Assembly: GCA_038496445.1 (NCBI GenBank)
Contig: JALMLS010000194.1
Coordinates: 62,001-126,000, forward strand
Direction: 5' to 3'
Length of the DNA stretch: 64,000 bases
From: Trichosphaerium sp. ATCC 40318
Taxonomy: Eukaryota; Protista; Tubulinea
Shown here: piece by piece, positions 1 through 51,149 of the stretch
How positions within the stretch are numbered: position 1 is the first letter of the stretch
Layout of the letters: each line of letters opens with the position of its first letter
Position numbers and translations under genes: made by a program
Notes under the pieces: model-generated
Told to the model about the DNA's origin: nothing
Databases searched by the model: none
What the model saw: the letters and a program-made list of their open reading frames with translations, nothing else

Positions 1-151
1 ATTGTTAATGAAGGCCTGAGAATTTACACCTTTTGATGAATTAGCATAGCAAATTAGTCAGAATACTTGTATTGTACACAAAAACCTTTTCAATAAATTC
101 GCTAAGTACAAGCAAATCAATCGTATTATCAAAACAGTTAACAAACAATTT
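1..151 (+). repeat. 3' flank of an RCC1-SAM-like gene copy (tail type Y), implying another copy just upstream of the window
   Basis: Near-identical to 11307-11457 and similar to ~15035-15172, the 3' flanks of copies 2 and 3; identity ends after ...aacagttaacaaacaattt. Confidence 0.85.
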
Positions 152-363
152 CAATGTAGAAAATATTGTTCCATTATCTATTGATGAAAGCTTCTGTCGT
201 TAGTTAGATTTGTTGATTGGTAGATGTGACAACTCGCTATTTCTTACAGAATGCCACCATCTTGATACAGCTAGTACTATATTTTTACTACAAGGTTTAT
301 AATCGAATGACAAACACAGAACAACTTTTTTTTTTTTTTTACTTCATATATGACATCAAATCA

Positions 364-9482: not shown

Positions 9483-11296
9483 ATGGCAGAACCTCACACT
9501 TCCTCAGTTAATTTACAATATGTTAACCGTTTGGCCACTGGTTCCAACCATTCAATGGTAATCGCAGACGATGGCTTTGTTTACACGTGGGGACTAAACA
9601 ATCACCGCCAATTGGGTACAGACGAAAATGAGAGTTATATCGCAAGACCAATAAAATCACTCGTAAATATCGTCTGTATTGCTGCTGGATACGAACATAG
9701 CCTTGCAGTTGATTCAAACGGTATTGTGTATGTATGGGGCTGTAATTCAGACGGGTCATTGGGTCTGGGTCACTTTGCGTCACCTGTTTCGTCACCAACA
9801 CGTGTTCCAAATCTCAACAATATCACGAACGTCTCTGCCTATTTTGTGAGTATGGCGTTATCAAAATCAGGTCATGTCTACTCTTGGGGAGACAACAGAA
9901 ATCAAGGATTGGGTCATTCATTCAACAAGAAGAAAGTTTCATCACCAGCGGTTATTCCAAATCTTCAAAATGTTCAAAAAATTCAAACTAACGTGTATGT
10001 AAGTGGAGCAATGACGTCAACAGGTCATGTCTTTCTTTGGGGAACAACAGATCATGAAGCAAAAGATAAATCGTTATTCTTGAAACGAAAGACAATTTCA
10101 CGTGTTCCAAGTATTGATGATGCCACTGATATTGCCATTGGTGATTGTCATGTACTTGTTCTCCTCAAGTCAGGACAAGTATTTTCTTTTGGATACAACT
10201 TCAATGGGTGTCTTGGGTTGGGTATTGATGGCGAGTATGGCCAGGGTATCATCAAAGGACTCAATAACATCAAATCTGTACATGCTGGTGTGTGTACATC
10301 ATTTGCGATTGATGATGAAGGTTGTTTGTTTGGTTGGGGTAAAGGGAAATGGATTGATTCGTTCTCATCAAACAAACCATTAAAATTACCTGGAAAATAT
10401 CTTGAGTTTGCCAATAAACGATGGCATTACTTGGCAATATCTCATGACTTGTGGCATTACTTAGCAATATCTCATGACTTTCAGTTGGTCACAGGTGGAG
10501 ATAATGGTTATGGTCAATCAACACCACAAAAGTTAACATTCACCAATTATGAAAAGGTACTTTGAAATCTTATTTGTCTTTCTTTTTGTCTCACAATCTA
10601 CAAGCACTTTAAACCAGCCAATAAAGTAATCGCAAAAGATAAAAACGATGATGCTGTGAAAGCAATGAATGCAGAGGTAAAAGAAGACAGAAAAGATAAG
10701 TACTTGTCAAAAGCTGTGGTTGAGCCCAATCGTGATTACACCAAGTTTGGAGATGCTCCTGATCACCTTGATATCATTCAAGATGCCCTTGAAGCCTTTA
10801 AAATACACCAAAATCGAGATGAATACATCAACAATGTAAGTATCAGAAAATAAGCGATACCTATCTCACATGGTATTTTAGGTTAACAATCCTCGCTTGT
10901 CACTTGATGAACACACCTCAAATGTTCGCCCTGTTTCATCAAACTACAACACGTCACTTTTATCTGAACAATCGTGGAATGACAAGCCTCATGTTTCAGT
11001 CGCTCACACAAAGGTGTCTCGTTTTAATTTTATTTTCTTCACATTTAATTTTGTTCGTTTAGTCGGAGTTCTGTCCACCTCAAGAGAATCAATCAGTCGC
11101 TACTCCCAAATATGATTGGAAGTCAACATTGGCGAGGTTGGGTATTTCAAGTAAAAGAGCACAAGAACTTGGGTCGTTGATGAACAAAGCAGCCATCAAG
11201 AAAAGTGAAATCATTCCTGAAGTGTTAGAAGAGCTTGGATTCAATGTGATTGAGCGTATCAAAGTCATAAAAGCAAAGGAAAACAAAATGCTATAA
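9483..11296 (+). CDS. RCC1-propeller + linker + SAM-like protein, copy 2 (linker A, tail Y; 30-nt duplication WHYLAISHDL)
   Basis: ATG 9483; RCC1 exon ends at the gaaaag|gtact donor; final exon DWKSTLARLGISSKRAQELG...LGFNVIERIKVIKAKENKML*. Confidence 0.85.
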
Positions 11297-11554
11297 ACAG
11301 AACATCATTGTTAATGAAGGCCTGAGAATTTACACCTTTTGATGAATTAGCATAGCAAATTAGTCAGAATACTTGTATTGTACACAAAAACCTTTTCAAT
11401 AAATTTGCTAAGTACAAGCAAATCAATCGTATTATCAAAACAGTTAACAAACAATTTTGGTCACTTATATTACCAGCTGGTTTGCCAACACAAAAAAAAA
11501 ATTTACAATCTTTAGAATAATATTTCGTGGTATCATACAAGCGGCTTTTTAATA

Positions 11555-13033
11555 CGAATACTGTGAGGTTATTAGGATCACTCCTTATTTGATCAGTCTT
11601 GAATACAACTGTAGCACGCCATGTGGCCACAGCAGTATTTCTAGGAGCTGTCCACTATTTCATAAAACAGTCAGACAAAGAAAGAAAAACAACGTTCAAA
11701 AATCGTTTCAGACGTTAATGTTTTGTTGTTCTGTTGGACTTCTTGGTTGTTTTAACATAAGGAGAAACGTACAGTAAACATGCCATCAAAAGCTGGGTAC
11801 GGCTGACCATTTCGTGTCCACGTGATAGTAAGTTCTTCATTGTGATTGTTTTTCTCTTTACGGAACTGAGCCACTTGAACTACTTTAGCTGTAACAGTAA
11901 TATCTGCAGTGCCACAATCAGCTTCGATATCATCAATCAAGTTCACTACAGCAAAGAAACGAAGCCACCTAAATATCATGAACACGTGTCAACAAAATCA
12001 TTAAAGTGACATGGTACTACTTACATATTCTCAACATCAACAGGACAGAAATGTGGAGAACTCATATTGCGCATGAGACAATACTCGTTCATAGGTCTGT
12101 ATCCTGCCAACGTATTTCCAAGGCGGTAAGTCTTGTATGCTCCGATATAATCTTCCCAGTGGAACTGAGGTGCGTCCATGTATTCATGAAGTGTCAGAGA
12201 GCACAGTTGACGTTCAATTGGCCCAGAACCAGGGTACGCTATGAAAGTCATAAAAACGAAAGGAAAGGTTTTTTTAGTGTTTGGTTACCCTGCTTGAATT
12301 CTAAGGTATGTTCACCAGAAGAGAATCCTTCGGATCCCTCATACTGATAAAACGTTCTGTCGTCTTCACCATGTGACTTCCAATCGAGTGGTTCACCATC
12401 AAAGAGCACAATATTAAAAAACAAAAATCAGAAAAAACTTTGAAAGTACAAAAAGGGTTACTTGTTTGAAGTCTCAACTGAGCATCTTGTGCGACTACCG
12501 GAGGTCTATCAGTTAACCAATGACCCATTTGGAGGCTGCTTGAGTAAGAGACGAAGCGTAATTGGCGCCATTGTAGGCAGATCCACCATCATACTCCTCG
12601 CCTATGAAGTGTCATGTTACAACTGCTTTTTGCTCTAAAAGTCCGTACCAACTTTACCAAAGTTGTGACCGAGTTCTAGAAAAAAGTTGAGTTTGTAGGG
12701 TTTTTTTAGTTTTTTACCTTTGCTGGGCGTTTAACAACTTTACACTCCCTGTGAAGTACTCTTGTGGCAATATGCTTTGTCGTAGCATAGAGCTCATACA
12801 CTTTACCTCCATTTACGCCAGTATCATAAGAAATAATTTGAGGTGAAGATTCCAAGTTAAATTTTTTTTCTTCTACGAACCCACGATACTTTGGTACGTA
12901 CTCCTCAACTACTGTCGTGCATTTCTTGGAGTGGGGTATTTGTAACAAATCTGATGTGGTAGCTATCGTTTGGATGCTTCGACAATACTATTACCGCTAT
13001 GTACGCCAACAGAAGAGCAACAAAACGTTTCAT
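11555..13033 (-). pseudogene. Deleted duplicate of the M64 peptidase gene
   Basis: Near-identical to 15380-17704 but lacks ~16239-16419 and ~16683-17345 (the latter removes HE of HELGH) and the C-terminal end; also has small frameshifts. Confidence 0.9.
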
Positions 13034-13136
13034 ATACAAGCGAATATTTTGATGCTGGATTTGCCAAGTAAAACAAGTTGGCAAAACGTTTTGCTACACG
13101 CAGTCTAAACTTCAATATTACGGTTTTACATGAGTT

Positions 13137-13178
13137 ATGGCAGAACCGCTAACTACGTCAGTCAATTTGCATATGTTA
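13137..13178 (+). pseudogene. 5' stub of the RCC1 gene (MAEPLTTSVNL) ~100 bp upstream of copy 3
   Basis: atggcagaaccgctaactacgtcagtcaatttgcatatgtta resembles the start atggcagaaccacaatcttcg.c.gttaatttacaatatgtta. Confidence 0.75.
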
Positions 13179-13234
13179 CAGTTGAGATTTGGCTATCAAA
13201 ATTTTATATCAATTTGAGCTCATTACACGTTTAA

Positions 13235-15024
13235 ATGGCAGAACCACAATCTTCGTTGGTTAATTTACAATATGTTAACCGTTTGGCCACTGGTTGGGAC
13301 CATTCAATGGTAATCGCAGACGATGGCTTTGTTTACACGTGGGGACGAAACAATGAGCGTCAATTGGGTAACACAGACGAATATATGAGTTCTATCGCAA
13401 GACCAATAAAATCAGTCATAAATATCGTCTGTATTGCTGCTGGATGCTATCATAGCCTTGCAGTTGATTCAAACGGTATTGTGTATGTATGGGGCTGTAA
13501 TTCAGACGGGTCATTGGGTCTGGGTCACTTTGCGTCACCTGTTTCGTCACCAACACGTGTTCCAAATCTCAACAATATCACGAAAGTCTCTGCCTATTAT
13601 GCGAGTATGGCGTTATCAAAATCAGGTCATGTCTACTCTTGGGGAAACAACGAATATCAAGGATTGGGTCATTCATTCGACAATTCGAAAGTTTCATCAC
13701 CAGCGGTTATTCCAAATCTTCAAAATGTTCAAAAAATTCAAACTAATTGTGTAAGTGGAGCAATGACATCAACAGGTCATGTCTTTCTTTGGGGAACAAC
13801 AGAAGATGAAGCAATAGATAAATCATTATTCTTGAAACGAAAGACAATTTCACGTGTTCCAAGTATTGATGATGCCACTGATATTGCCATTGGTTTTAGT
13901 CATGTACTTGTTCTCCTCAAGTCAGGACAAGTATTTTCTTTTGGACACAACTGGTATGGGTGTGGGTGTCTTGGGTTGGGTATTGATGACGAGTATGGCC
14001 AGGGTATCATCAAAGGACTCAATAACATCAAATCTGTACATGCTGGTGTGTGGACATCATTTGCGATTGATGATGAAGGTTGTTTGTTTGGTTGGGGTAA
14101 AGGGAAATGGATTGATTCGTTCTCATCAAACAAACCATTAAAATTACCTGGAACATATCTTGAGTTTGCCAATAAACGACTTCATTCATTGGCAATATCT
14201 CATGACTTTCAGTTGGTCACAGGCGGAGATAATGATTATAGTGAATCAACACCACAAAAGTTAACATTCACCAATTATGAAAAGGTACTTTGAAATCTTA
14301 TATGTCTTTCTTTTTGTCTCACAATCTACAAGCACTTTAAACGAGCCAATAAAGTAATCACAAAAGATAAAAACGATGACGCTGTGAAAGCAATGAATGC
14401 AGAGTTAAAAGAAGACAGAAAAGACAAGTACTTGTCAAAAGCTGTGGTTGAGCCCAATCGTGATTACACCAAGTTTGGAGATGCTCCTGATCACCTTGAT
14501 ATCATTCAAGATGCCCTTGAAGCCTTTAAGATACACCAAAATAAAGAAGAACACATTGAAATACAAGTACATCAGAAACAAGCGATACCTATCTCACATG
14601 GTATTTTAGGTTGACAATCCTCGCTTGTCACTTGATGAAGACACCTCAAATGTTCGCCCTGTTTCATCAAACTACAACACGTCACTTTTATCTGAACAAT
14701 CATGGAATGACAAGCCTCATGTTTCAGTTGCTCACACAAAGGTGTCTCGTTTTAATTTTATTTTCTTCACATTTAATTTTGTTCATTTAGTCAGAGTTCT
14801 GTCCACCTCAAGATAATCAATCAGTCGCTACTCCCAAATATGATTGGAAATCAACATTGTTGAGGTTGGGTATTTCAAGTAAAAGAGCACAAGAACTTGG
14901 GTCGTTGATGAACAAAGCAGCCATAAAGAAAAGTGAAATCATTCCTGAAGTGTTAGAAGAGCTTGGATTCAATGTGATTGAGCGTATAAAAGTCATAAAA
15001 GCAAAGGAAAACAAAATGCTATAA
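13235..15024 (+). CDS. RCC1-propeller + linker + SAM-like protein, copy 3 (linker A, tail Y)
   Basis: 352-aa RCC1 ORF; downstream exons nearly identical to copy 2, ending KAKENKML*. Confidence 0.85.
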
Positions 15025-15309
15025 ACAGAACATCATTATTACTGAAGGCCTGACATTTGATGAATTAGCATAGCAAATTAGTCAGAATACTTGTATTGTA
15101 CACAAAAACCTTTTCAATAAATTCGCTAAGTACAAGTAAATCAATCGTATCAAAACAGTTAACAAACAATTTCGGTCGCTTATATTACCAGCTGTTTGCC
15201 AACACAAAAAAAAAATATTCAATCACGTGATATCTTTAGAATAATATTTCGTGGTATCATACAAGCTGTTTTCGTACAATCAAGATGCTTTTTAATACTA
15301 AAATGCAAT

Positions 15310-17704
15310 CTATTTAAACCCTGTAGGCAGCAATGCTATTATTACAATCGTCTGAGAAAGAAACAACTTTTTCCTTTGTGAATACTGTGAGGTTATTAGG
15401 ATCACTCCTTATTTGATCAGTCTTGAATACAACTGTAGCACGCCATGTGGCCACAGCAGTATTTCTAGGAGCTGTCCACTATTTCATAAAGTCAGACAAA
15501 GAAAGGAAAACAACATTCAAAAATCGTTTCAGACGTTAATGTTTTGTTGTTCTGTTGGACTTCTTGGTTGTTTTAACATAAGGAGAAACGTACAGTAAAC
15601 ATGCCATCAAAAGCTGGGTACGGCTGACCATTTCGTGTCCACGTGATAGTAAGTTCTTCATTGTGATTGTTTTTCTCTTTACGGAACTGAGCCACTTGAA
15701 CTACTTTAGCTGTAACAGTAATATCTGCAGTGCCACAATCAGCTTCAATATCATCAATCAAGTTCACTACAGCAAAGAAACGAAGCCACCTAAATATCAT
15801 GAACACGTGTCAACAAAATCATTAAAGTGACATGGTACTACTTACATATTCTCAACATCAACAGGGCAGAAATGTGGAGAACTCATATTGCGCATGAGAC
15901 AATACTCGTTCATAGGTCTGTATCCTGCCAACGTATTTCCAAGGCGGTAAGTCTTGTATGCTCCGATATAATCTTCCCAGTGGAACTGAGGTGCGTCCAT
16001 GTATTCATGAAGTGTCAGAGAGCACAGTTGACGTTCAATTGGCCCAGAACCAGGGTACGCTATGAAAGTCATAAAAACGAAAGTCGAAAGTTTTTTTTTT
16101 ATTGTTCGGTTACCCTGCTTGAATTCTAAGGTATGTTCACCAGAAGAGAATCCTTCGGATCCCTCGTACTGATAAAACGTTCTGTCGTCTTCACCATGTG
16201 ACTTCCAATCGAGTGGTTCACCATCAAAGAGGACAATAAGAGAATCTAGTTTTTGAACCAACTTTAGCCTACAACAAAAAACCAGAAACAAATTAGTGAG
16301 CCTTACCTTCTTCAGGACATCCAGAAATAGTAAAATCTAATAGCCATCGTTTATACTGTCCATTTGATTCAAACTTATAACTTATAGGACCTCCTTTAAG
16401 CAAATACCAAGGGTAAGCCTAAAAAACAAAAATCAGAAAAAACTTTGAAAGTACAAAAAGGGTTACTTGCTTGAAGTCTCAACTGAGCATCTTGTGCGAC
16501 TACTGGAGGTCTATCAGTTAACCAATGACCCCATTTGGAGGCTGCTTGAGTAAGAGACGAAGCGTAATTGGCGCCATTGTAGGCAGATCCACCATCATAC
16601 TCCTCGCCTATGAAGTGTCATGTTACAACTGCTTTTTGCTCTAAAAGTCCGTACCAACTTTACCAAAGTTGTGACCGAGTTCATGGCGAAGTACAATAGT
16701 ACCAGAAGTAGGAGATTCAGTAGATATCGCAAATTCACCACCGAGGCCACCGTAGTAAGGAGAGTTTCCAATCAAAGTAGGGTAATCGCAAGCTTGTGGC
16801 CCTGTCTGCTTACAAGCGTCTCTGGCTGCCTTTTGGTTGATAGAACTATTAGTAACTTCTTCACAATGTCATTTATTAAAACGTACACTAGCTTTGGATG
16901 TGTAAACACCTCTGAGTTCTGTTCCAGATCTATATAATCCAAACGCTGTGTTCAATGGTTTTCCACCTTTTGAGGAAGATTTAGTTAGGTTGTCAAAAGA
17001 GAATCTTTGTTTTAGTTACCAACGCCAATGCCTGACTCAACACTTGGTCTAAATACAACCCAAACATTAAAAAGAGGAAGATAATCGGCGAAAGTAACGC
17101 CATTGAACATATCATCGATCTACAAAATTGTCACGTGACCAACAATTTGAAAAAAAAGACGAAAGTTAATTTTGAAGCGTACAAGACGTTTCATATCATC
17201 TAGCATTTCTTCACGTTCGCTCTGTGTATACCCATCACCCATAAAAACTAAATCTATTCTATTCCACGGCTCTCCAGTTTCAACAATTGGAATAACTTCA
17301 TCTGCATTCTGTTCGAGCGAAACCTAGAGAATACACGTGATTAACAAAAAAAAAAGTTGAGTTTGTAGGTTTTTTTAGTTTTTTACCTTTGCTGGGCGTT
17401 TAACAACTTTACACTCCCTGTGAAGTACTCTTGTGGCAATATGCTTTGTCGTAGCATAGAGCTCATACACTTTACCTCCATTTACGCCAGTATCATGAGA
17501 AATAATTTGAGGTGAAGATTCCAAGTTAAATTTTTTTTCTTTTACGAACCCACGATACTTTGGTACGTACTCCTCAACTACTATCGTGCATTTCTTGGAG
17601 TGTGGGGTATTTGTAACAAATCTGATGTGGTAGCTATCGTTTGGATGCTTCGACAATACTATTACCGCTATGTACGCCAACAGAAGAGCAACAAAACGTT
17701 TCAT
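15310..17704 (-). CDS. Secreted M64-family (IgA peptidase-like) metalloprotease (multi-exon)
   Basis: Signal MKRFVALLLAYIAVIVLS; NRIDLVFMGDGYT; YYGGLGGEFAIST..SGTIVLRHELGHNF; GEEYDGG; YRPMNEYCLMRNMSSPHFCPV. Confidence 0.85.
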
Positions 17705-17807
17705 AAACAAGCGAATATTTTGCTGCTGGATTTGCCAAGCAAAACCAGTTGGCAAAACGTTTTGCTACATACAGTCTAAACTTCAATATTACGATTTTAC
17801 GTGAGTT

Positions 17808-17849
17808 ATGGCAGAACCACTAACTACGTCAGTCAATTTGCATATGTTA
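17808..17849 (+). pseudogene. 5' stub of the RCC1 gene upstream of copy 4
   Basis: Same stub as 13137-13178, part of the duplicated segment. Confidence 0.75.
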
Positions 17850-17904
17850 CAGTTGAGATTTGGCTATCAAAATTTGAAATCAATTTGAACATTACGCACG
17901 TTTA

Positions 17905-19933
17905 ATGGCAGAGCCACAATCTTCGTCAGTTAATTTACAATATGTTAACCGTTTGGCCACTGGTTACTTACATTCAATGGTAATCGCAGATGATGGCTTT
18001 GTTTACACATGGGGACAAAACAATGAGCGTCAATTGGGTAACACAGACGAAGAAAAGAGTTCTATCGCAAGACCAATAAAATCACTCATAAATATCGTCT
18101 GTATTGCTGCTGGACACGAATATAGCCTTGCAGTTGATTCAAACGGTATTGTGTATGTATGGGGCTGTAATTCAAACGGGTCATTGGGTCTAGGTCACTT
18201 TGCGTCACCTGTTTCGTCACCAACACGTGTTCCAAATCTCAACAATATCACGAAAGTCTCTGCCTTTTGGGTGAGTATGGCGTTATCAAAATCAGGTCAT
18301 GTCTACTCTTGGGGATACAACTTCTTTCAAGGATTGGGTCATTCATTCAACAATTTGAAAGTTTCATCACCAGCGGTTATTCCAAATCTTCAAAATGTTC
18401 AAAAAATTCAAACTAATTGGCATGTAAGTGGAGCAATGACGTCAACAGGTCATGTCTTTCTTTGGGGAAAAACAAATAATAAAGCAAGAGATAAATCATT
18501 ATTCTTGAATCCAAAGACAATTTCACGTGTTCCAAGTATTGATGATGCCACTGATATTGCAATTGGTTTTAGTCATGTACTTGTTCTCCTCAAGTCAGGA
18601 CAAGTATTTTCTTTTGGACACAACTACAATGGGCGTCTTGGGTTGGGTATTGATCACGATTATGGCCAGGGTATCATCAAAGGACTCAATAACATCATAT
18701 CTGTACATGCTGGTACATGGACATCATTTGCGATTGATGATGAAGGTTGTTTGTTTGGTTGGGGTAAAGGGAAACTTATTGATTCGTTCAAATCAAACAA
18801 ACCATTAAAATTACCTGGAAAATATCTTGAGTTTGCCAATAAACGACGTCATTACTTGGCAATATCTCATGACTTTCAGTTGGTCACAGGTGGAAATAAT
18901 TATTGTGGTCAATCAACACGACAAAAGTTAACATTCACCAATTATGAAAAGGTACTTTGAAATCTTATTTGTCTTTCTTTTTGTCTCACAATCTACAAGC
19001 ACTTTAAACCAGCCAATAAAGTAACAATAAAAGATAAAAACAATGATGCTGTGAAAGCAATGAATGCAGAGTTAAAAGAAGACCGAAAAGATAAGTACTT
19101 GTCAAAAGCTGTGATTGATCCCAGTCATGACTACACCAAATTTGGAGATACTACTGAACACCTTGACATGATTCAAGATGCACTTGAAGGCTTGAACATA
19201 CAGCAACAAAATAACTCTGTACGTCTCACTATAAGGTGAACAACTTACTGACATTTGTAGGAGTGCAACCAACGCAAGTATAGTCTGATAGTTGATGAAA
19301 CATTATCAAACAACCAAGTGTTAAATCAACAATCCTGGAGCAATAAACCAAATGTATCTGTTGAAGCCAACAATGAGGTACCATTTGCTTTATAAAATTC
19401 CGCACATGCAAGATGAATGTTACAACTAATTGGTTCCTAGTATTATGAATTAGAGGAAAATAGTATGCCACAGCATGACATAGCCAACAACTCTTCATCA
19501 CCAAAGAAATCGTCTTATCAGAGTCCAGCACCTGGTGACGATTTTAGAAGCAGCTCCTCTTCATCTGACAACCTAAGGCGACAATCATGGCTCAATAAAC
19601 CAAATGTTTCTGTTGACATAAAGAATAAGGTACACTTCCACGACTTTGCTTCTTTCTTCTTGTTGTAACACTTAATTGTTATTAATGGCGTTTGTTTAGT
19701 CACATTTCGGTGTACCACATGAGAATCAATCAGTTCTAAATGTTGAAACTGATTGGAAGTCAATATTGATGAAGTTGGGTATCGCAAATCAAAGAGCTCA
19801 AGAACTTGGATCATTGATGAACGATGCAGGCGCAACAATTGATGAAATTGATAAAGATGTGCTGATAGATCTTGGATTCAGCTTGAGGGAACGTATTAAA
19901 ATCATCAAAGCAAAGAACAACAACACTCTTTAA
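17905..19933 (+). CDS. RCC1-propeller + linker + SAM-like protein, copy 4 (linker A, two SWxxKPxVSV exons, tail Z)
   Basis: 351-aa RCC1 ORF; final exon DWKSILMKLGIANQRAQELG...LGFSLRERIKIIKAKNNNTL*. Confidence 0.85.
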
Positions 19934-33650: not shown

Positions 33651-36600
33651 TTATTTACGGACTTTCCAGTTCTTGCTCATAGTCAATTTTTTTCTTGCTT
33701 CTGGATTTGGTTTCAAAATAACAAAACCTTCAAGAACGGAGCTTAGTGGTATGTGCTCATCATTTGCCATCTCAGCACGTTCTCCATGTTGCAACAAGAC
33801 TGGTGTTTGGTGTGTTTGGAATCCTGTAATCGATTTTGGTTTACCAGCTTGTCCAACGACATCTACGGCTTGTCCAACACGTACAGTAACCTAATACATA
33901 ACGTTAGACACGTTTATCCTGATTAATTTTTTTTTTCCTGTACGCACCTGCAATGGGTTCATTTCTTCATCGAACGTCATAAGGATACGTGGGTACATGG
34001 ATAGAGATATTAAATACAACAAATAATGGGCCTAGAGATCATCAGTAACTTTATCAAATAGCACGTAAAGGTCAAATTGTCTACGCGACAAGAAATTTTT
34101 TCTTTCATCAAAAAAGTGAAGACGCACCTTGCCAAGGATAATGTTTTTAAAGTCAGTACAAGCATACATGACTGAAATCAAACCTGCAACAGCAACAGGG
34201 CTCATTAAGTTGCCCTCACTATGGAACGGCTGCAATCCGATTGTTCCTTTACCCATATACAACAGACCCTAAAAAGCGCGTAAGCACAAATGTAGTTGGA
34301 AAGTAGACGCGTAGAACATCACTTAGTAACTGTTCTCCCTTCTGAGCGTTATAATCGTACCTGCGCAAAGCGGACAAGGAATTTATGATTTGGCTCCTTA
34401 TTATAATACACCGCCAAGTTTCTGAGTAGTTGAGCGATACGAGAGTTATTTGTACCAGCACCAATTAAGCCAAGACCTAGACATTAACGTTAAGTACGAA
34501 CCGACTCAAAAAAACGCAAAAAAAAAAAGTTGAACTCGAAATAAAAAAAACGTACTCAAAATTGCGCCCATGGCTGTTTCTCCATCGTGGTCGTGACTGA
34601 GCTTAGATAGTGTGTCCATTACTGTAATTTCAGGGTTTCCTACGCGCAACAAACCGAGAGCGAGAGGTACAGTACGTCTGATGTTAAGTTCACCATATTG
34701 CAACAAGTGATCAAAAGAACGGATAACCATATCAGCTCCAATCTCTTCACACATTGAAATCAAAGCTATACCCAAAGTTGCAACAGACTAAAAAACACAG
34801 TGAGCACGGTGCAAGCACAAAAAAAAATTCAGTTTTAAAACGAACCTGAAATTCATCATCCTTCTCTAAGTGTTCGCTGCAAGCGTGTAACATTTCTTGT
34901 ACTTTAAGTACGTTACCTGAACCAGCGTATGCCAAGGTATCGACTGTGTAGTACGAGAATTTGAAGAATGGCTTATCTCCCTTTAAGGTCTCCAAGACAA
35001 CTTCAGCAGCCTCTTGTTTGCCCAAATACAACAAACCAAGAGCAAGAGACAAGAATCGCGCCCATGTAGACGAGAGACCTGTTTCGCCTTTATCGAGAAT
35101 AGTAGCAAGCAATGTCTCAGTAATATCTCCATCGCAAGTACCAGCGAATACAAGACCTTTAAAAACGTGTAAACAAAAAACCAGGAAAAAAAAAACACAA
35201 CTACGTGTGTTACGAACGAGTAGCGTACCTAGAGCGAGCGCGTAATGGGCAGTGACTTCCATAGTGTTTGATCCTTCTAGAAGTGGCAAGAGCAATTCTT
35301 TGATATCCTCGTTACCAGAGGAACAGTATGCAATACCCAAACCCAAAGCAGCAGCTGTTTTAACAGTACCGCTTTTGTTTTCTTCTAGAGGTTCACGAAG
35401 CAAACCAAGAGCAGCGCCATAGGCATCACGTACACCAGAGTTTACAATACCGATACCCAATAGAGCTCCAGCCTAATAAAGACGTCAATAAGCTGTAAAA
35501 AACTACAATTTTCGAAAGCATGTCGCATTTGGACGAAAACTCGAATGTAAACGTTACCTTGATGTAATCTTGGTTGGAGTACATGAATTTATCAAGCTTT
35601 TGACAACCGCCCTCGATATCCCATATGTTAATGAGGCCAAGAGACGCTGTTGCGCTCATCATGCCGTGTTCCTTATTTTTAAAAATCCAAGTGTTTGATG
35701 CTATAAAATCATGGTTAGAAAAAGATGTACAAAGGAGAAAGAAATGGAGTAAAACAAAAAACTCTTTTTTTTTTTTTTTTTGATTAGATATCAGTCAACA
35801 TGCATACCTTCACCGGACATTAGAGTGTCGTTGCGGTAACCAGCATTTACAAAACCATTTGTGAATGTAGAAGCGAGATTTTGGCGTGCAGAGTCTACAC
35901 GTGTAGCGTTACGTGTTTGTTCCAAGTGTGTTTTGTAAATATCTTCTGGAGTTTTAGGTTCCATCAAATCCAATTCCTACAAACATTATTAAGGAGAATT
36001 AAAATGTAAAAACGCCAAAAAAAAAAAAATCAAGAAGAGAGAAAATGTTACCTTAGCGAGTTGTAAAAAGTAATCGGATAATTTAGAGTTAGTAACAATG
36101 CCGGTAAGTTCCTCGTTAAGCTCTTCTTGAGCTTCATCAAACTCTTCTTCATCTTCATCGTCCATATCCATATCATCATCATCATTTATTAAATCAAAAT
36201 AATGTTGACGGGCAAGCATAAATGCCAACTGACGTTTCATACTAAGCAGAAAAAAAATCAACAAAAAAAAAAAAAAGAAGAAAATTTGTCTTCTCTTTAC
36301 ACTTCTAGTCACATTCGCTCAAATGCTTACTATTTTGTTTCTCCATACCACAAATACACCCTACGCTTTATTTTGCTCATAAAAGCAGTATAATCGAGGG
36401 CTGTGGGTGGAGAAAAGCGAAGAATTTGAACGACTGTTTTTTAGAAGTGTAAAGAAAGAAAAAAATGGAATCATTTTAACGTACTTTGGGTCTGTGCAAT
36501 TTTCGTAGATTTCTTTAACGTAATCTTTACGATCAAGTTGTAAAGCAACACGCATCTCTCCAGGAATGTTACCCACTTTTTTGTTAATGTTACGGACAAT

Positions 36601-37918
36601 ATCCAATACTTTCTTGTCCTCAGGGCCAGGTAGGTAGTTGGCACATTGGATCAAATATATACAAATACGATGGTAGCTATCCTCATCAATGAACTCTTCA
36701 AAAAAAAACATGTCAGAAAAAAAAAAACACGCTTGAAAAAACAAAACGAATAAAAAAAAAAAGCGAAAGCATACCAAGGATTTTCTCGAGTTGTTCTACT
36801 TCTAGAAGTAAATCACAGGCCTCTGGTCTGGCGTTGTGTGTTACATAGTATGGTACGATTTCTTCAACAAGGGCCATAATCTTTGGTTCAGCACCCTATA
36901 ACAAACAGAGTCAGTAAAAAGAAAAATTAAAAAAAAAAAATAACTTCACACAAAAAACCAACAAAGGCAAACAATTTCAACCAAAAAAAATCAATAAAGA
37001 ATGACTCTATAAGGACGTACTTTATCATCATATTCTGCCGCAATCTCAGCGGATAGATGCCTAAAATATTAATGTCAGAGAATAAAATCAAGAACATTTA
37101 ATAGAGATAGTCTGTAACTCCACAAAAAAATGAAAACAAAAAAAAAAAAACTCAAAACAGTTTTTGGCGTTACAAAATATTTGTCGGCGCAGCCGTTTAG
37201 GCTGTAAACGCTATATAACGTTAACTGAAGCGATACTGTACGCTATAATAATTTTTGAAGCGTTTTGTTATTTTATCTCTTTAAAAGCCGTTTAACGGGG
37301 TATATGAGTTACGTACTGAACGTATTCGTGTCCCCACTCGCCAACGTCGCCACCAAGACCGCTTAGACGATAAGTTAAGCATAAACGTTCTGTGTTTGGT
37401 ATCGTCATAGAGAGTACTGATAGTATATCTGAGAGCATTTTCTAAGGTATGTGAGATTTTGAACGTCTTTCGAAATTAAAACGGCTGAATAAGCGCAAAA
37501 AATACTCCAGTAGTGTTTTCCAAGCGCTTTGTAACCATGTAGGCAGTTATTGATTGTTTTGCCCACGCACCTTATTTTCGCCGTCTGGCATCTCGTTGTG
37601 TGCTTCCTTTAGCGTATCAACGTGTGGGCTCAAAAACTTGAGTGGTTTAGGGACAGAGGTCATTGAGGAAGTGGACTCTCTGATCGCTTTTTTCATCAGT
37701 TTTAACCCATTAGCTGCAATATCGGATGAGTTATCTTGCACTGAGCCAACGAGCGTTTCTAATTCTTCCTTTAAACGCCTATCTTCATCTGTCTACAACA
37801 AATAATTGGCGTTTAATTATTATTTGATGATTTAAACTACCAGGTCATCATCCTCTGTATCTGGCTTCTTTGTGTTGGTTTTTTCTTCTGGTACTGTTTT
37901 CTTTTGCTCTGTTTCCAT
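33651..37918 (-). CDS. RPN1: 26S proteasome regulatory subunit RPN1/PSMD2
   Basis: [18 protein letters not shown]; [20 protein letters not shown]; [20 protein letters not shown]; [25 protein letters not shown]. Confidence 0.95.
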
Positions 37919-38149: not shown

Positions 38150-41100
38150 ATGGTGGGTACCGTTTCGTATGGTACTTTAGCGCTTATTTTTTGTATTTTG
38201 ATACTTACTGCTGTAATAGCGCATATACGCTTGAATCACGGTACCTTTAGGAAATTCGTTACGTTAGTGCAAAACTTTCTTGTATTCGTCCCAAACACTC
38301 ATAATCTCGTAGGGAGAAGGCGACAAAGCATGATATCAAAAGATTCAAGGTGCTATTGGAGCGCCTCGAAGCGTATGAAAAAGTGGCTATGGAACACGCT
38401 AAAGAGCTTAATTATGATCACGACAAAGCTATGAGGCAGGAAGTCGCCAAAGACATGAAGTGCGCACCTTGTTCAGCCCAAAAATGCTTGTTTAGCTCTA
38501 AACCTATTTTAACGCTCATTTTAGAGACAGCGAAGGCAGTAAAAAGAAGGCAAAAAAGGCAAAAAGCAAAGACAGAAATGTTGACATAAAGGATCCCAAA
38601 AACGCTTCTAAGCAACCTATACCAGAAGATTTTTATGATGGATGTACGTGTAACCATTCAGATGGCTTTTAATTAGTAAACTGACAAAAAACCCATTTTC
38701 TCTCTTGTGTCACGCTGCAACTGGCTTTATTTGATCTCTAACCAATTATTTCTTTGTAGCTTTTCAAGGTGACATGACTAAAGAGGAGGCAGCTCTTATT
38801 CTAGCTATGAATCCAGCGTATGTTTAGTTTTCTTTATTATTTTTTTTAACTCTCGCTTATTATTGCTTTTTCACTTTTTCACGTACTTATGACGCTTAGT
38901 GATTGGTCTGATAAGAAGAAAGTGACTACTGCTCATCGTAAACTCATGCTTTTGAATCACCCGGATAACGGAGGATCGAATTTTCTTGCTACAAAGATCA
39001 ATGAAGCGAAAGATATTTTGATAGATGGTATCGAGCGTGGAGACACTGACGACCTCTCTGGTGCAAGTGATGAGCGTAAAGAAGAGATTAGAAAAGAAAA
39101 AGAGGAAGAAAAGGCAAGACAAGCTGCTGAAGAGAAAGGCGAAGATGAAGAAAAGGAAAAAGAAGACGAAGACGATGAAGTAGCAGGTACCTATTCTTCT
39201 TAGTTTTCATCGTTTATAGTACAATATACGTAAAGTTCTGACCTTTTTCGTTTTGTTAAGATGATCTTTCCGCTACTATGGGTATGGGTGATTTAGGAGG
39301 CTCTAGTGAGGCCTCGGAAACTAAAGATACAGATGAAGAAGTAATAAAAATTAAGCAAGAAGCAGATGCCCGTTTAAGAAAAATGAGTGAGCTTTCTATG
39401 GATTTCCCTGATAAAACAGAATTGAAGACGCTGAGCGTAGAGGAACTATTGGGTGAAGTCAAATCAGTAAAACGTCCAACAGTTTATGAATGGTATGAAG
39501 CTTCTAAGGGCGTAATGTATGATTACGGTGTAATGGGTACGTGCAATGATAGTTACTTTGAAAGGGCTGTTTTTTCAATCATTTTTTTTTCTTGTCTACG
39601 CGAGACAACGTGTAGTGCTTGGCTACGTGTTGACTGACTTTTTCATGTAGGCCTTGAAAGAGCCTCAAAATACTTTAAAGACCAACGTAGAGGTGTAAAG
39701 AAAAGCTATAGGAGGATGCGAGGTGTTTCAACGCCTAGAGAAGCAATGCAGATCTTGCAACATTTTTTTGGCACCACGCTTGGCTTAGGATATTACTTTA
39801 GCTATGTTTTACTCCAGAGGAAGCGTATACCTACCCCAAGTCCATACAAGAAAGAAAGACGAGCATTGTATATGTCGCAGTTGATGCGCTCAATTCGCAG
39901 GCTACGTCGTGCAGCAGTTGATCGGTACTGTGTGAGAGTCTTATATAACGATAAAATCGTACAGCTGGATCCTATCCGGGGATTTATCTTCAACCTCTAC
40001 AAAGAGGCACAAGAGGACAACGATAGGTATAGTGACCCGTATATTGAAGCCAGAGATGCTTATAACAGAGAACTGTTCAAACAAGTTTGTATATTAAAAG
40101 AACGCGGTATTGACGTACAAGGCATCATAGACGCAGCGTTGACAGAGGAGAAGCTTGAAAAGCAGTATAGAGATAGTATTGCTAAAATGAACGCAAGAGT
40201 GGAAAGAACACGAGATGCTATAGCCAAAGCGCATGTAGCGCAAAACAATACCGAATCAATTCCCACACAAACACCCGAATCCCCACCCATGCCGGCTTAT
40301 CAAGAAACTCCACTACCAAAGTATGAGGCTGAGATATCGAGGGTGAGGATGGAAATGGAACAAGAAAAGCGAAAGATTGATGCGATGTTTAAAAACATTG
40401 AAGATGATGCTCAGATTGAGTATACTGCTAGACTTGCTTTTGAAGATAAGAGAGATGCTCTTCTTGTTGAGGAAGAGAAGAAGAAGCAGGAAGAAATCAT
40501 CAAAGCAGAGAAGCAAAGAGAAAAGGACATGAAAGACCCTGTTAAGAGGAAGAAGATTGAAAAAGAAGAAGCTGAAGCAATTAGAGAAGATAATGAATTA
40601 AGAGCAAGGTGGGGGTTACCTAAGAATGAGAAGATCCTCAGTGAGAAGGAGAAGGCTATTGTGGAAGCTGAGAAGGCTAAAGAAGCAGCTGAGAATGAAG
40701 GTGAAGAAGAAGGAGAAGAAGAATTATCAAAAGCTGATGGTGAGCGTGCTGATAAGAAAAAGAAGGAAGCAGAAGCTGCTGCTAAAGAGGCTGAGAAAAA
40801 AGCTGCCAAGGAGAAAGAAGAGGAAGAAGAGAGGTTAAAGAAGGTTGAAGAAGAAAATAAGAAGAGAATTGAAGCTACAAGAAAGAAGCTCAAGTCTTTG
40901 GATAAGCAGTATACCATGCAAGCAAAAAAGAAGGTTCATTTTGATCGTATAAAGTTTGAGAAAGAAATGCAAGCTGAGATGAATGATAAGCAAGCAGAGA
41001 CATTAGAAATTCAGATACGTGAATCATTACGTGCTGTTGAACCTCTTCCTATTCCAAAACCAACAAGTGGTGCTTTTGAGAGGTTCTCAGAAGTTCCTGA

Positions 41101-41332
41101 TGATTTCGTCTTGAAAGACAGCGTACTTGGTGAGTATGTTCCTCCTCATAGAACTGTTCGTGGGTTCTTAAAGAGAGCTCTTGTTCCTCCTCCTACTTTA
41201 TCTCAAGCTGAAGAAAAACTCTTCTCTTGGTCTAAGGCTTTGAAGGAGCTTGAAGAAATTGAACAAAATAAATCGGGAGATAACACTGATACTAAGAAAA
41301 ACCAAGAAGAGAAGAAGGAAAATGAGGCATAA
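38150..41332 (+). CDS. PAM18/TIM14-type J-domain protein with N-terminal TM and long charged coiled-coil C-terminus
   Basis: FYDG|SFQGDMTKEEAALIL...AHRKLMLLNHPDNGGSNFLATKINEAKDIL; followed by exons to an E/K-rich 538-aa ORF. Confidence 0.7.
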
Positions 41333-41715: not shown

Positions 41716-43696
41716 TTAATCTTTGTCTTCAATCTCATCGTAATCAGTACGCTTTCCAACTCTGGTTGTCATGAGCACGACAATACCCATAAGTACGAAA
41801 CAAGTAAGTCCACCGATGATGATACCAATAACGAGACCAATTGGTGCCTTTTTCCTTGGAATAATCACCTCTAAAGAAAAAACAAATTAGTCTTGTAATT
41901 TCTTCGTAAGATAGAAAACCAAAAAAAAACTCCCAAAGTCGGGTGACGCCAAAAAAATTCACTTTTTGTCCGTACCAGGTGCCCAATGATAAACTGTTCT
42001 GTTTGCTATTGGTTGTACAGGTCTGAAGTTACCATTCATTACAGGTACAGTAGCCAGAGCGTTGAGTTGTTGTTGAGTGATACCAACAATGTCTTGCATT
42101 ATAAACCATTGTACTTTTTCATCACATTGTGGAGTGGTTAGAGATCCAAAATAATGGAAGTAGCCTTTGCTGCTAACGTGTTTCATGACGTCGCCCATCT
42201 AAAGTAGAATCGTTAAAAAATGCCAATTAACTACGCTTCGAATTAACAAAAAAAAACCAAAAAGCACGTGATTTGTAATGTAAATTTTGTTGACCTAATT
42301 TTGTATCACGTGATTTTTGTAAATGGTAAATAAACACAAGAGCCCGTCTTAGGTCAAATTTATATGAGTTCTGCGCCTGAGGCATTCAACTAGTTCATTT
42401 CTCTAACGTATGAAAATCACGTGATTTTTTTGAAACTGATTTTTTTTTTTTTGCGAACAAAAGCGGAAATTTTTTTGTTTTGAAAATGTACGTTAAACTC
42501 GATAGGCAATGACACGCTAGTGTTGACTTCTTTTAGAAGTGGTGTTTCGTCATCGATCTAAGGAGAAAATGAGGTTGTTTCGGCTTCTAAAAAAGAAGGT
42601 TTTAAAAATTTACCCTTTGGATGAACGGATCAGGTGTTGCGCCGTCTGTAACATTGTACATTACAGCCACTACAGCGTATTCAATACCAGAGATATTCTT
42701 TTGGTGTACCTAAAGAACAAAAGTTAAGCGACTGGTAAAGGGTCCTACTGAGTCTAATAAAACTGTCTGCAGGCTATGTAGTAATTTGTGCGCTCCAAAA
42801 GACGTATGAACGGTATGTTTACGTACAAAATGTACTTCCAAGGCAACTTGTTTTCCGTCAACAGTATGTTCGCTCTTTGAGTGTAAATGAATCTGTACGA
42901 GTTCGTATGCCTCAGTGAGTGGTCCACCTGTTACTTCCATAACACCAGATTGAGATACATTCACTACAAACAAAAAAAAAATTAGAAAAAAACCGAAAGG
43001 TAACCGACTAAAATCTTTGCTTACCAAACAATGTATGACCGTTGTTTTGGATTGTATGTCCAGTATTAACTCGGTAGTTAGCGGTCTAAAACACTGGATT
43101 AGAGCTCAACCACGGAATCTTAAAGGGAGACAAGTAGGAGTTAAAGTGGGTTCGTACAAGCGGTTTTAGAGGCGGCTCCATTGCTGTCGAAACGTTTAAT
43201 TTTAAAATGTTAATAGGTGATTGGCTCGTTCCTCCACACTGGGAATCTAAGGGAGATTGTAAGCGTTTATTGATAGTGGGAAGTAAATAGTCAATTTTAG
43301 GGGACGGTTCGCTAGAACTCACTCGAAACAGCTTTTGTAATACATTGAGAAGTTGAAAGGCACAAAAGAAGAAAAATATCAAAAAAAAAAATGTTGAAAT
43401 CCGAAAAAAAAGTTTTGGTCTATTTCATCAACACGTGACTAGTTATAAATTCAAAACAAAGAAATGGTATTAACAGGTTAAAAAAAACTGTGTTGGCACA
43501 GAACCGCCTTTTTTTGTTGGCAGAAATGGCCGTTAGCCTTTTAATGGGTCTCAACAAGTGTATTCGTACCAGGACATATGTCTGCCCAGTTTTGTGGTGA
43601 AGTAGGTCCTGTGGTGTCGTATGACCAGTCTTCGCATGTTTGAGATAAAGCTACTGTAGCGATAGCAAGGGTGATGAACAAGTGAAGAGCACTCAT
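41716..43696 (-). CDS. Alpha-carbonic anhydrase, signal peptide and C-terminal TM
   Basis: WSYD..GP..W; QSPINI; QIHLHSKSEHTVDGKQVALEVHFVH; YFGSLTTPQCDEKVQW; GNFRPVQP. Confidence 0.92.
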
Positions 43697-49091: not shown

Positions 49092-50928
49092 TTACAGGAT
49101 ATTTCTGTGCTTTGCTTTGAATACTTTGACCCTTTCAATGGGACTGAATTCTAGTTCTTCTAGTAAGGTTGAAGTTATGTCCTCAGGCTTGATATTAGCA
49201 TCATTCATCAATGATCCAAGTTCTTGTGCTCTTTCATTTGCAATACCCAACTTCATCAATATTATCTTCCAATCAGGTTCAACTTTTGGAGCTGATTGGT
49301 TCTCATATGCTTCTCTGAAATGTGACTAGCACAGCCCGCATTAATAAACGCAAGTACTTTTACAAACTAACGAGATATGTACCTTATTATTGGCGTCAAC
49401 AGAAATGTTGGGTTTATTGAGCCAGGACTTTTGAGATAAAACGCTCAGATCATCATCTGATTCGTCACACTAGAATAATGATCAGTTGTCACGTGGATTG
49501 TTAGTTGTAAAGGCTTACTTTAAAGCGTTCCTCTTGCTTTTGTATTTCAAGGGCTTCAAGGGCATCTTGAATCATATTAAGGTGTTCAGGAGCATCTCCA
49601 AACTTTGTGTATTCTCTATCAGCATCAAAATCACGATTTGGTTCAATAACAGCTTTTGCCAAGTACTTTTCAATTCTGTCTTCCTTCAGAGCCTCACTGC
49701 TTTTGGCTGTAGTGATTTGCTATATTGTCATTTAACTTAAATATTTATGTTTGGTTTTGAGCACCTTTTCACTCATTTGTTTTGTTGGCGGAAGATCTGT
49801 AGAGTTATATTTGGTGTTCTAAAAATATCAACATTAAAGCTCAGAAAGACAACTTGTTATGGTACCTTTTTGTGATAGTTGAATGTCAATTTTTGCAGGT
49901 TTGATTCTCCATAATTATTACGACCATCTGTGTCCAACTTGAGGTCATGAGATATTGCCAAATAATGATATGCTTTATTGGCAAACTCAAGATATTTTCC
50001 AGGTAATTTTAATGGTTTTTTTGATCTGAACAAATCAATCCATTTCCCTTTACCCCACCCAAACAAACAACCTTCATCATCAATCGCAAATGATGTCCAC
50101 ACACCAGCATGTACAGATATGATGTTATTGAGTCCTTTGACCATACTCGCGATCAATACCCAACCCAAGACACCCACGCCAGTTAAGTCCAAAAGAAAAT
50201 ACTTGTCCTGACTTGAGGAGAACAAGTACATGATGAGAACCAATGGCAATATCAGTGGCATCATCAACACTTGGAACACGTGAAATTGTCTTTGGATTCA
50301 AGAATAACGATTTATCTTTTGCTTCATCTTCTGTTGTTCCCCAAAGAAATACATGACCTGTTGATGTCATTGCTCCACTTATGTCATTAGTTTGAATTTT
50401 GTTGACATGATCAAGACTTGGAATACGTTTTGGTGAGTTTACTTTCTTTGTGTCAAATGAATGACCCAATCCATGATATTCATTGTCTCCCCAAGAGTAG
50501 ACATGACCTGCTTGCGATAACGCCATACTCACATGATAGGCAGATACTTGCGTGATATTGTTGAGATTTGGAACACGTGTTGGTGACGAAACAGACTTGA
50601 AGTGACCCAGACCCAACGACCCAGCTGAATTACCGCCCCATGAATACACAATACCATTTGAATCAACTGCAAGGCTATGAAAAAACCCAGCAGCAATACA
50701 GACGATATTTGTGAGTGACTTTATTGGTCTAGCAATAGCTCTCGCTTTGGTTATTAGTTCCTGTAAATATTGAAAAGTAGACTTCTTGGCTGTGCCTAAC
50801 TGGCACCAAGAGTTACCCCCCCACGTGTAAACAAAGCCATCGTCTGCGATTACCATTGAATGTTCGTAACCAGCGGCCAAACGGTTAACATATTGTAAAT
50901 TAACCGACGAAGTTTGAGGTTCTGCCAT
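49092..50928 (-). pseudogene. RCC1-propeller + linker + SAM-like, copy 9 (inverted; 11-nt frameshifting deletion ~50139)
   Basis: tatggtcaaaggactc versus tatggtcagggtatcatcaaaggactc; tail DWKIILMKLGIANERAQELG...LEFSPIERVKVFKAKHRNIL*. Confidence 0.8.
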
Positions 50929-51149
50929 TTGTATTGTTTGTAAATTAAGCAAGTCTTTTTTATAACACGTGACTTCGCTTATGCTGGTACCGAACAAGTT
51001 CTAAAAATTACATTTGTTAACACCCAGGAATTTCCTAACTGTTAACGCTGTATTGTGGAAAAGAAAGCTCTGATGGACCAGATTCGCGATTGAAGTAACT
51101 TTGTACAAAGTTTTTCTGAAATGCATGACACGCAACGCTAAACGCATAA

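Follow-up and report, generated by a model that had tools for sequence, protein, structure and literature searches.

How can the loops of a gene be far more diverged than the young duplication in which the gene lies? This question is raised by a 64,000-nt stretch of the genome of the protist Trichosphaerium sp. ATCC 40318 (contig JALMLS010000194.1, positions 62,001 to 126,000), hereafter the window, in which a tblastn search revealed nine copies (c1 to c9) of an exon encoding an RCC1-like beta-propeller. Three of the copies are interspersed with a peptidase-M64-like gene and its truncated twin, in the order c2, M64 pseudogene, c3, M64 gene, c4. An earlier note on this DNA had read c3 as a recent crossover hybrid of c4 and c2, with loop codons that nevertheless differ from both, and had concluded that the loops change much faster than the neutral DNA beside them. 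The duplication provides a rare internal calibration, because within a single young unit the loop codons can be set directly against flanks, introns and synonymous sites. We found that 28 hypervariable loop codons are about 10 times more diverged than neutral DNA or any flank of the unit. The loop codons do not appear to mutate faster; probably, gene conversion between paralogues reshuffles an old pool of loop states while diversifying selection keeps the pool varied, and targeted mutagenesis is unnecessary.

Self-comparison of the window confirmed the layout and delimited two tandem duplicate units that are 97-99% identical, one with c2 at its head (U2, 9483-13234) and the other with c3 (U3, 13235-17904). 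The propeller gene and tail at 13235-15272 pair with 9483-11548, the minus-strand gene at 15380-16682 with 11556-12676 (16239-16419 being absent from U2), and the 5' flank at 17350-17904 with 12680-13234 (16683-17349 being absent from U2). As had been described, c3 has its 5' flank, including a short stub, in common with c4, and its linker, tail and 3' flank in common with c2; the DNA upstream of c2 is unrelated to that preceding the other two copies. In c4 the 5' flank consists of the M64-like gene's promoter and first exon, and that of c3 is their twin: the M64-like gene and c4 have a common divergent promoter region of 149 nt, and the truncated twin likewise with c3. The duplicated unit spans from one ATG to the next, as would be expected from unequal exchange between exon 1 of two array members.

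The age of the duplication depends on which DNA is taken as its clock. Between 11690-12240 and its twin there are 3 substitutions in 551 nt (0.54%), exactly the number given in the earlier note, which had treated this interval as neutral. It consists, however, mostly of exons of an expressed, spliced gene. The name M64 was correct: in a profile search made exon by exon, three consecutive exons were collinear with Pfam Peptidase_M64 (PF09471), and they include the HExxH zinc motif of the family (HELGH). Transcript evidence here and below comes from Logan contigs of four public RNA-like runs, and such contigs drop rare variants; at the differences between U2 and U3 in the first M64 exon, the contigs match the U3 letters. 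We therefore rejected the M64 twin as a neutral clock, since its exons are under purifying selection and run about 6 times too slow. The M64 exons differ between U2 and U3 at 13/1073 sites (1.21%) and the M64 introns at 12/353 (3.40%; p=0.016 against the exons, with 5 of the 12 intron mismatches in a single cluster). The non-coding parts of the c2 and c3 genes together with the 3' regions gave 13/371 (3.50%) and the tail coding exons 17/574 (2.96%). Pooling all non-coding DNA, the neutral divergence is 25/724, or 3.45%, and all classes can be accounted for by one duplication at about 3.5% pairwise divergence, given purifying selection on the M64 exons. The most diverged non-exon part of the duplicated unit is the 149-nt intergenic stretch between the ATG of the M64 gene and that of c3 or c4 (14/149, 9.4%, including an 8-nt patch that resembles small indels).

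Measured by this clock, the contrast of an order of magnitude between loops and flanks is real. The loop differences listed in the earlier note are present in the alignment (TGGGAC in c3 against TCCAAC and TACTTA in its neighbours, TGCTAT against TACGAA and CACGAA, and HNWY against YNFN and HNYN). We defined a first set of 51 hypervariable (HV) codons from the other six copies only; c2 and c3 differ at 23.5% of these HV sites vs 2.6% of the rest, c3 and c4 at 27.5% vs 3.0%. For a second set, the 28 most variable codons, we calculated Nei-Gojobori proportions of non-synonymous (pN) and synonymous (pS) differences, by counting only. Here pN was 36.6% between c2 and c3 and 44.3% between c3 and c4, whereas pS outside the 28 codons was 4.1% and 4.5%, matching the flank clock. 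All ten pairs among c1 to c5 behaved in the same way, with non-loop pS of 2.8-7.4% and HV pN of 37-51%, including pairs whose tails are 13-28% diverged or unalignable. By this counting, pN at HV codons was 0.46 vs a pS of 0.047 elsewhere, and pN/pS of the whole exon was 1.28.

Length changes, too, are located at the variable slots. Copy c2 carries an in-frame tandem duplication of 30 nt (about 10421-10480) that doubles a ten-residue stretch, and c3 one of 6 nt (13958-13969) that doubles Gly-Cys, both at or beside a loop slot; c3 is also one codon short at the slot near 13748. Outside the propeller, a further hypervariable patch covers the splice donor of the linker exon and the final dozen or so codons before it. 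All copies differ there, the c2 version being like those of c7 and c8, and 20/38 aligned bases differ between c2 (10813-10850) and c3 (14541-14578).

The HNWD genes of the fungus Podospora anserina offer a yardstick for such a pattern. These genes are reported to evolve in concert and to be reshuffled, with selection acting on four positions of each repeat on the interaction face (PMC1805685). A non-synonymous excess at the variable positions, as in HNWD-type genes, is what the counts given above show. Concerted evolution is found as well. Intron 1 is only 0-4% diverged for all pairs among c1 to c5, and in c4 the linker exon has diverged by about 11% from every other copy and the tail by 13%, yet exon 1 and intron 1 by only 2-5%; homogenisation of the exon must therefore postdate the divergence of the flanks. 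Across c1 to c5, both exon 1 and intron 1 have thus become homogenised regardless of the age of the flanks.

The interior of exon 1 in c3 does not have the structure of a hybrid. Among the sites where c2 and c4 differ, c3 is c2-like at 36, c4-like at 26 and like neither at 12, in interleaved order, and a single-breakpoint hybrid of c4 and c2 was rejected (maximum chi-square, p=0.39). The crossover postulated in the earlier note thus stands for the flanks, which fit an unequal exchange anchored in exon 1, and fails for the exon interior. Copy c3 is c4-like in the first ~50 nt and c2-like in the last 50-100 nt only. It differs from both members of any pair among c1, c2, c4 and c5 at 29-34 sites, and c2 and c4 are therefore not special; all pairs among c1 to c5 are about equally distant, c1 and c5 being at least as close to c3 as c2 and c4 are.

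This pattern could also mean that the clock is inapplicable to the loops. The flank exchange, or long conversion of the spacer, anchored in the exons, would then have replaced exon 1 at its ends alone. The interior of c3 would be older, and its loop states would have been kept by selection with nothing fast after the event, analogous to the peptide-binding codons of the major histocompatibility complex (MHC) beside homogenised introns. The c4-like and c2-like ends, and an interior equally distant from c1, c2, c4 and c5, agree with such a history; so do the observations that c3 is as mosaic as copies with old flanks and that it has identical codons in common with the divergent c6-c9 group. However, a plain unequal crossover yields the ATG-to-ATG unit in one step and predicts a hybrid, and the c2-c3 divergence at framework and synonymous sites (4.1%) is that of the flank clock, which means that no greater age has to be assumed for the exon. 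We consider this close rival possible though unlikely. In practice it differs in timing only from conversion out of an old pool, and the age of the flank event may say nothing about that of the loops.

The source of the deviating states in c3 argues for conversion from other copies. At the 34 sites where c3 is unlike both neighbours, 28 states are present in other window copies, vs 14.7 +/- 2.5 expected from random base choice (P<1e-5); likewise, 22/30 codons unlike both neighbours are shared with other window copies, vs 3.5 expected for random one-step mutants. Private sites of c3 number 6 (0.57% of the exon), below the neutral per-lineage expectation of ~1.7%. Because private changes are no more frequent than neutral, there is no sign of faster mutation in the sequence. 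Among the nine copies c3 has the fewest private HV codons (5/28), each of them one step from a state at the same slot. When c3 was painted with a copying model, seven donors in 19 segments left 16 mismatches, vs 59 for the best single donor, and only 3/500 site-order permutations matched this; c1, c2, c4 and c5 were alike (at most 15/500). Copies c3 and c7 are exactly identical over 147 nt (14000-14146) vs 91.7% overall, although probabilities of longest exact runs under the independent-sites model are indicative only, as the conserved framework inflates runs. The reading frame is disrupted in three of the nine copies (c5, c6 and c9). These copies have loop states in common with intact ones and are the best donors for several c3 segments, and they are possible pseudogene donors. 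A PHI-like (pairwise homoplasy index) test on all nine copies gave p<0.0005. Painting, PHI-like test and pool sharing together point to exchange of segments between members, as in HNWD, the sequence signal being weak within c1-c5 alone (p=0.13).

Several results weigh against exchange as the source of the loop states. An exact donor within the window was found for just 5 of the 17 whole c3 slots, leaving 12 without. Of the informative site pairs in c1-c5, 60% are four-gamete-incompatible, near pairs (0.576) hardly differing from distant ones (0.599, p=0.13), and the pairwise run tests with c3 (p=0.0025) fail correction for 36 pairs. In addition, private changes in c1-c5 are 2.7-fold enriched in HV codons (21/47, p=5e-6). 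The weak linkage in c1-c5 may reflect very short tracts, donors elsewhere, or recurrent change in a small alphabet. The enrichment of private changes fits positive selection on new variants or unseen donors; some new variation therefore arises, or is imported, preferentially at the loops.

We also considered point mutation in place under very strong positive selection (omega around 10), without any exchange, where sharing would be convergence on a few favoured residues. An HV pN of ~10 times pS, the private changes concentrated in HV codons, the one-step origin of all five private c3 HV codons, sites near linkage equilibrium in c1-c5 and the 12 donorless slots are all in line with it. It is at odds with the spatial clustering of donor identity in each of c1-c5, the nine-copy PHI result, the excess of shared codons and the 147-nt exact tract with c7; a framework and intron 1 homogenised across copies with tails 11-28% apart also require exchange. 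Mutation in place is an improbable account. The same amino acid was encoded by the same codon in 62/64 cases; as proof of identity by descent this was set aside, because one-step changes of two-fold codons keep the third base and convergence would look alike.

Targeted or programmed mutagenesis of the loop codons, by a dedicated enzyme or by templated hypermutation, was one of three mechanisms put forward in the earlier note, besides intense selection and conversion from a larger donor pool. Conversion combined with selection fits best, in view of the pool states at 28 of 34 sites. The contrast between loops and flanks, the indels at slots and the near-independent assortment of slots would suit targeted mutagenesis, and nothing more does. 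Private c3 changes, by contrast, lie below the neutral expectation, and most of the deviating c3 states are already present in other copies. Window open reading frames (ORFs) of 100 aa or more contained no reverse transcriptase, deaminase or nuclease domain, a search that intron-split genes would escape, and no promoter-less cassette bank was found in the window, where tblastn returned the nine gene copies only. Within the window, neither an enzyme or template bank nor above-neutral change is thus found of the kind that marks programmed diversification by diversity-generating retroelements (DGR), AID/CDA-driven conversion or variable lymphocyte receptor (VLR)-type assembly. We give targeted mutagenesis hardly any credence. 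A dedicated mechanism of templated exchange, working in very short tracts and directed at the loop codons, comes to mind because of the near-independent assortment of the ~17 slots among c1-c5, with the 60% four-gamete incompatibility, the scarcely detectable decay of linkage and the 12 slots without a donor in the window; it too is very improbable. If true, a protist would be actively diversifying an RCC1-propeller receptor array in its germ line, at >10 times the point-mutation rate.

Under conversion from a standing pool, the direction and timing of exchanges and the part of selection would be as follows. At a time corresponding to about 3.5% of neutral divergence, unequal exchange, anchored in the ~1.3 kb over which exon 1 and linker are homologous, would have duplicated the unit of propeller gene, tail, M64 gene and promoter, putting c3 between c2 and c4, and one M64 copy would have decayed afterwards. 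Short-stretch conversion among c1-c5 would then have erased the parentage of exon 1, keeping every pair within 2-7% in framework codons and intron 1, however old their flanks, and re-assorting the standing pool of loop states among the copies. Selection for different binding faces would prevent homogenisation of the loop states and favour some new ones. The c3 loops would be unlike both neighbours because their states were drawn from other copies, namely c1, c5, c6, c7 and c9, where they are also present, and probably copies outside the window. From the erasure of parentage within the 3.5% clock and from a framework pS of ~4-5%, simple equilibrium reasoning gives rough estimates that agree with each other and suggest conversion per site at ~10-30 times the mutation rate. 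Relative to the neutral clock, the turnover of loop states is ~10 times as fast as the divergence of neutral DNA, and it consists almost entirely of re-used family variants.

The encoded domain was assigned to the RCC1-like beta-propellers (PF25390 WD40_RLD, PF00415 RCC1) by sequence match and by its seven blades. Against Pfam PF25390, c3 scored 196 bits and c4 214 bits (cut-off 150). An AlphaFold2 (AF2) model of c3 had a mean predicted local distance difference test score (pLDDT) of 87.5 and a predicted template modelling score (pTM) of 0.88, with 25 strands in a meander. In this model, 28/28 HV codons lie in or beside alternate inter-strand loops and none in the intervening loops. From the meander topology, the HV codons would all be placed on one face of the propeller, as the selected positions of HNWD are. 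About 17 hypervariable slots are recognised in exon 1 of c3, and the HV residues are rich in Tyr (13% vs 3% elsewhere), Asn, Asp, Glu, Arg, Phe, His and Trp. This face has a putative binding function.

Swapping and retention of old loop variants is the ordinary mode of recognition gene families, and no special mutation machine is indicated here. By these data the RCC1-propeller array shares its evolutionary regime with the HNWD propellers of fungi, with MHC genes and with plant nucleotide-binding leucine-rich-repeat (NLR) clusters, and by analogy the array may have a role in non-self or partner recognition. Given the whole genome and several strains, the data would support a model, open to test, of how diversity is maintained among the putative binding surfaces in the germline repertoire of a unicellular eukaryote. 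A literature search found no published report of such an RCC1 propeller family under this regime. The RCC1-like domain of HERC5 and HERC6 reportedly evolves rapidly in a defence-related setting (PMC7775381); those are comparisons of mammalian orthologues, whereas we describe a tandem array with fixed hypervariable slots.

The HNWD/NWD WD40 genes of Podospora anserina (het-d, het-e) are described as having a near-identical propeller scaffold, concerted evolution within and between loci, a few diversifying positions per blade on the interaction face, and units reshuffled among members (Paoletti et al. 2007, PMC1805685; Chevanne et al. 2010, PMC2873952), all of which resembles our array. In these NLR-type genes it is a WD40 repeat that is exchanged, repeat number varies, and repeat-induced point mutation (RIP) may add mutations. 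Here, in contrast, parts are exchanged between whole-gene paralogues that encode an RCC1-type propeller of fixed seven blades, with a linker, a small tail and no NACHT domain.

Interlocus exchange is likewise combined with diversifying or balancing selection in the MHC of vertebrates and in plant NLR clusters, for instance RPP8 (10.1101/694240), and the clocks there disagree in the same sense, binding-site codons looking far older or more diverged than the adjacent introns and flanks. These systems have other folds (the MHC groove, leucine-rich repeats) and population evidence, whereas ours is one assembly with paralogues only. The tgrB1/tgrC1 genes of Dictyostelium (PMC12745789) form an amoebozoan recognition locus with repeated intralocus recombination, duplication and gene turnover; they encode immunoglobulin (Ig)-like surface proteins with structural variation between isolates, while for the RCC1 propellers no signal peptide was detected. 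Finally, chicken Ig conversion and lamprey VLR assembly (reviewed in PMC3924843) produce mosaics from short templated tracts, a likeness extended by the loop states that the disrupted copies share with intact ones. Those processes are somatic and enzyme-driven (AID/CDA) and draw on promoter-less cassette banks; none of this is indicated here, within the window and with contigs that drop rare variants.

Coordinates of the propeller genes, the M64-like gene and its twin in the window.
Feature	Position	Strand	Basis or remark
c1, start	6058	+
c2 exon 1, RCC1-like propeller	9483..10556	+	ORF and alignment; 3-nt deletion and 30-nt tandem duplication
c2 donor GT	10557	+	homology to c3 joint in RNA contigs
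c2 intron 1, linker exon (10605-10835), intron 2, exon 3, intron 3, tail exon	10557..11296	+
Truncated M64 twin (pseudogene)	11556..13084	-	several exons gone; without DNA matching 16239-16419 and 16683-17349
Stub, ~45-nt relic of exon-1 start	13138-13182	+	~55 nt upstream of c3 ATG
c3 exon 1, 350 codons, seven-blade RCC1-like propeller	13235..14284	+	Pfam PF25390, alignment, AF2 model
c3 intron 1	14285-14332	+
c3 linker exon	14333-14566	+
c3 intron 2 (inferred)	14567-14609	+	inferred from c2 joint
c3 exon 3	14610-14741	+
c3 intron 3	14742-14790	+
c3 tail exon	14791-15024	+
M64-like gene, expressed, ~11-12 exons, introns 47-115 nt	15229..17755	-	spliced contigs, CT..AC joints, four runs
M64 exon	16656-16826	-	profile positions 109-155, includes HELGH
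M64 exon	17018-17116	-	profile positions 41-69
M64 exon	17183-17320	-	profile positions 1-36; 26.5 bits vs cut-off 26
Stub twin, ~45-nt relic of exon-1 start	17809-17853	+	~55 nt upstream of c4
c4 exon 1	17905..18951	+
c5, start	24584	+	1-nt deletion, 25580
c6, start	31408	+	1-nt deletion, 32185
c7, start	44389	+
c8, start	47117	+
c9	about 49860-50930	-	11-nt deletion

The gene structure of c3 was derived from GT..AG joints in the RNA-like contigs, with frames checked against the ORFs. Spliced transcript ends specific to c2 were also observed, in which 10809-10835 is joined to the next exon. A type A tail is found only in c2 and c3, and c4 has a type B tail (to 19933). A Pfam search of the tail exons returned no SAM match, and the tail is therefore not called a SAM domain here. 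The closest database relatives of the propeller, in a word search of 5.8 billion proteins, were 28-34% identical, and the genome's own paralogues are therefore outside that database. Further paralogue sequences that are absent from the window occur in the transcript contigs.

The window is eukaryotic in character, with a GC content of ~37% and introns of 43-115 nt, and housekeeping genes are interspersed with the propeller array. We observed a proteasome subunit of RPN1/RPN2 type (34747-36777, minus strand), a fragment of a carbonic anhydrase (42710-43024, minus strand) and a fragment of the largest subunit of RNA polymerase (59051-60205, minus strand). Next to the broken copy c9, a 425-aa ORF (51801-53078, minus strand) has a weak F-box match followed by about a dozen very regular leucine-rich repeats. 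A 538-aa Lys/Glu-rich ORF without a Pfam family (39716-41332, plus strand) is preceded by an ORF with a weak DnaJ match (38889-39200). Finally, a 139-152-nt piece of the 3' untranslated or intergenic DNA of c3 (15035-15173) is also present at the very start of the window (1-152) with 88.8% identity, a repeat which suggests that another array member or tail may lie just upstream.

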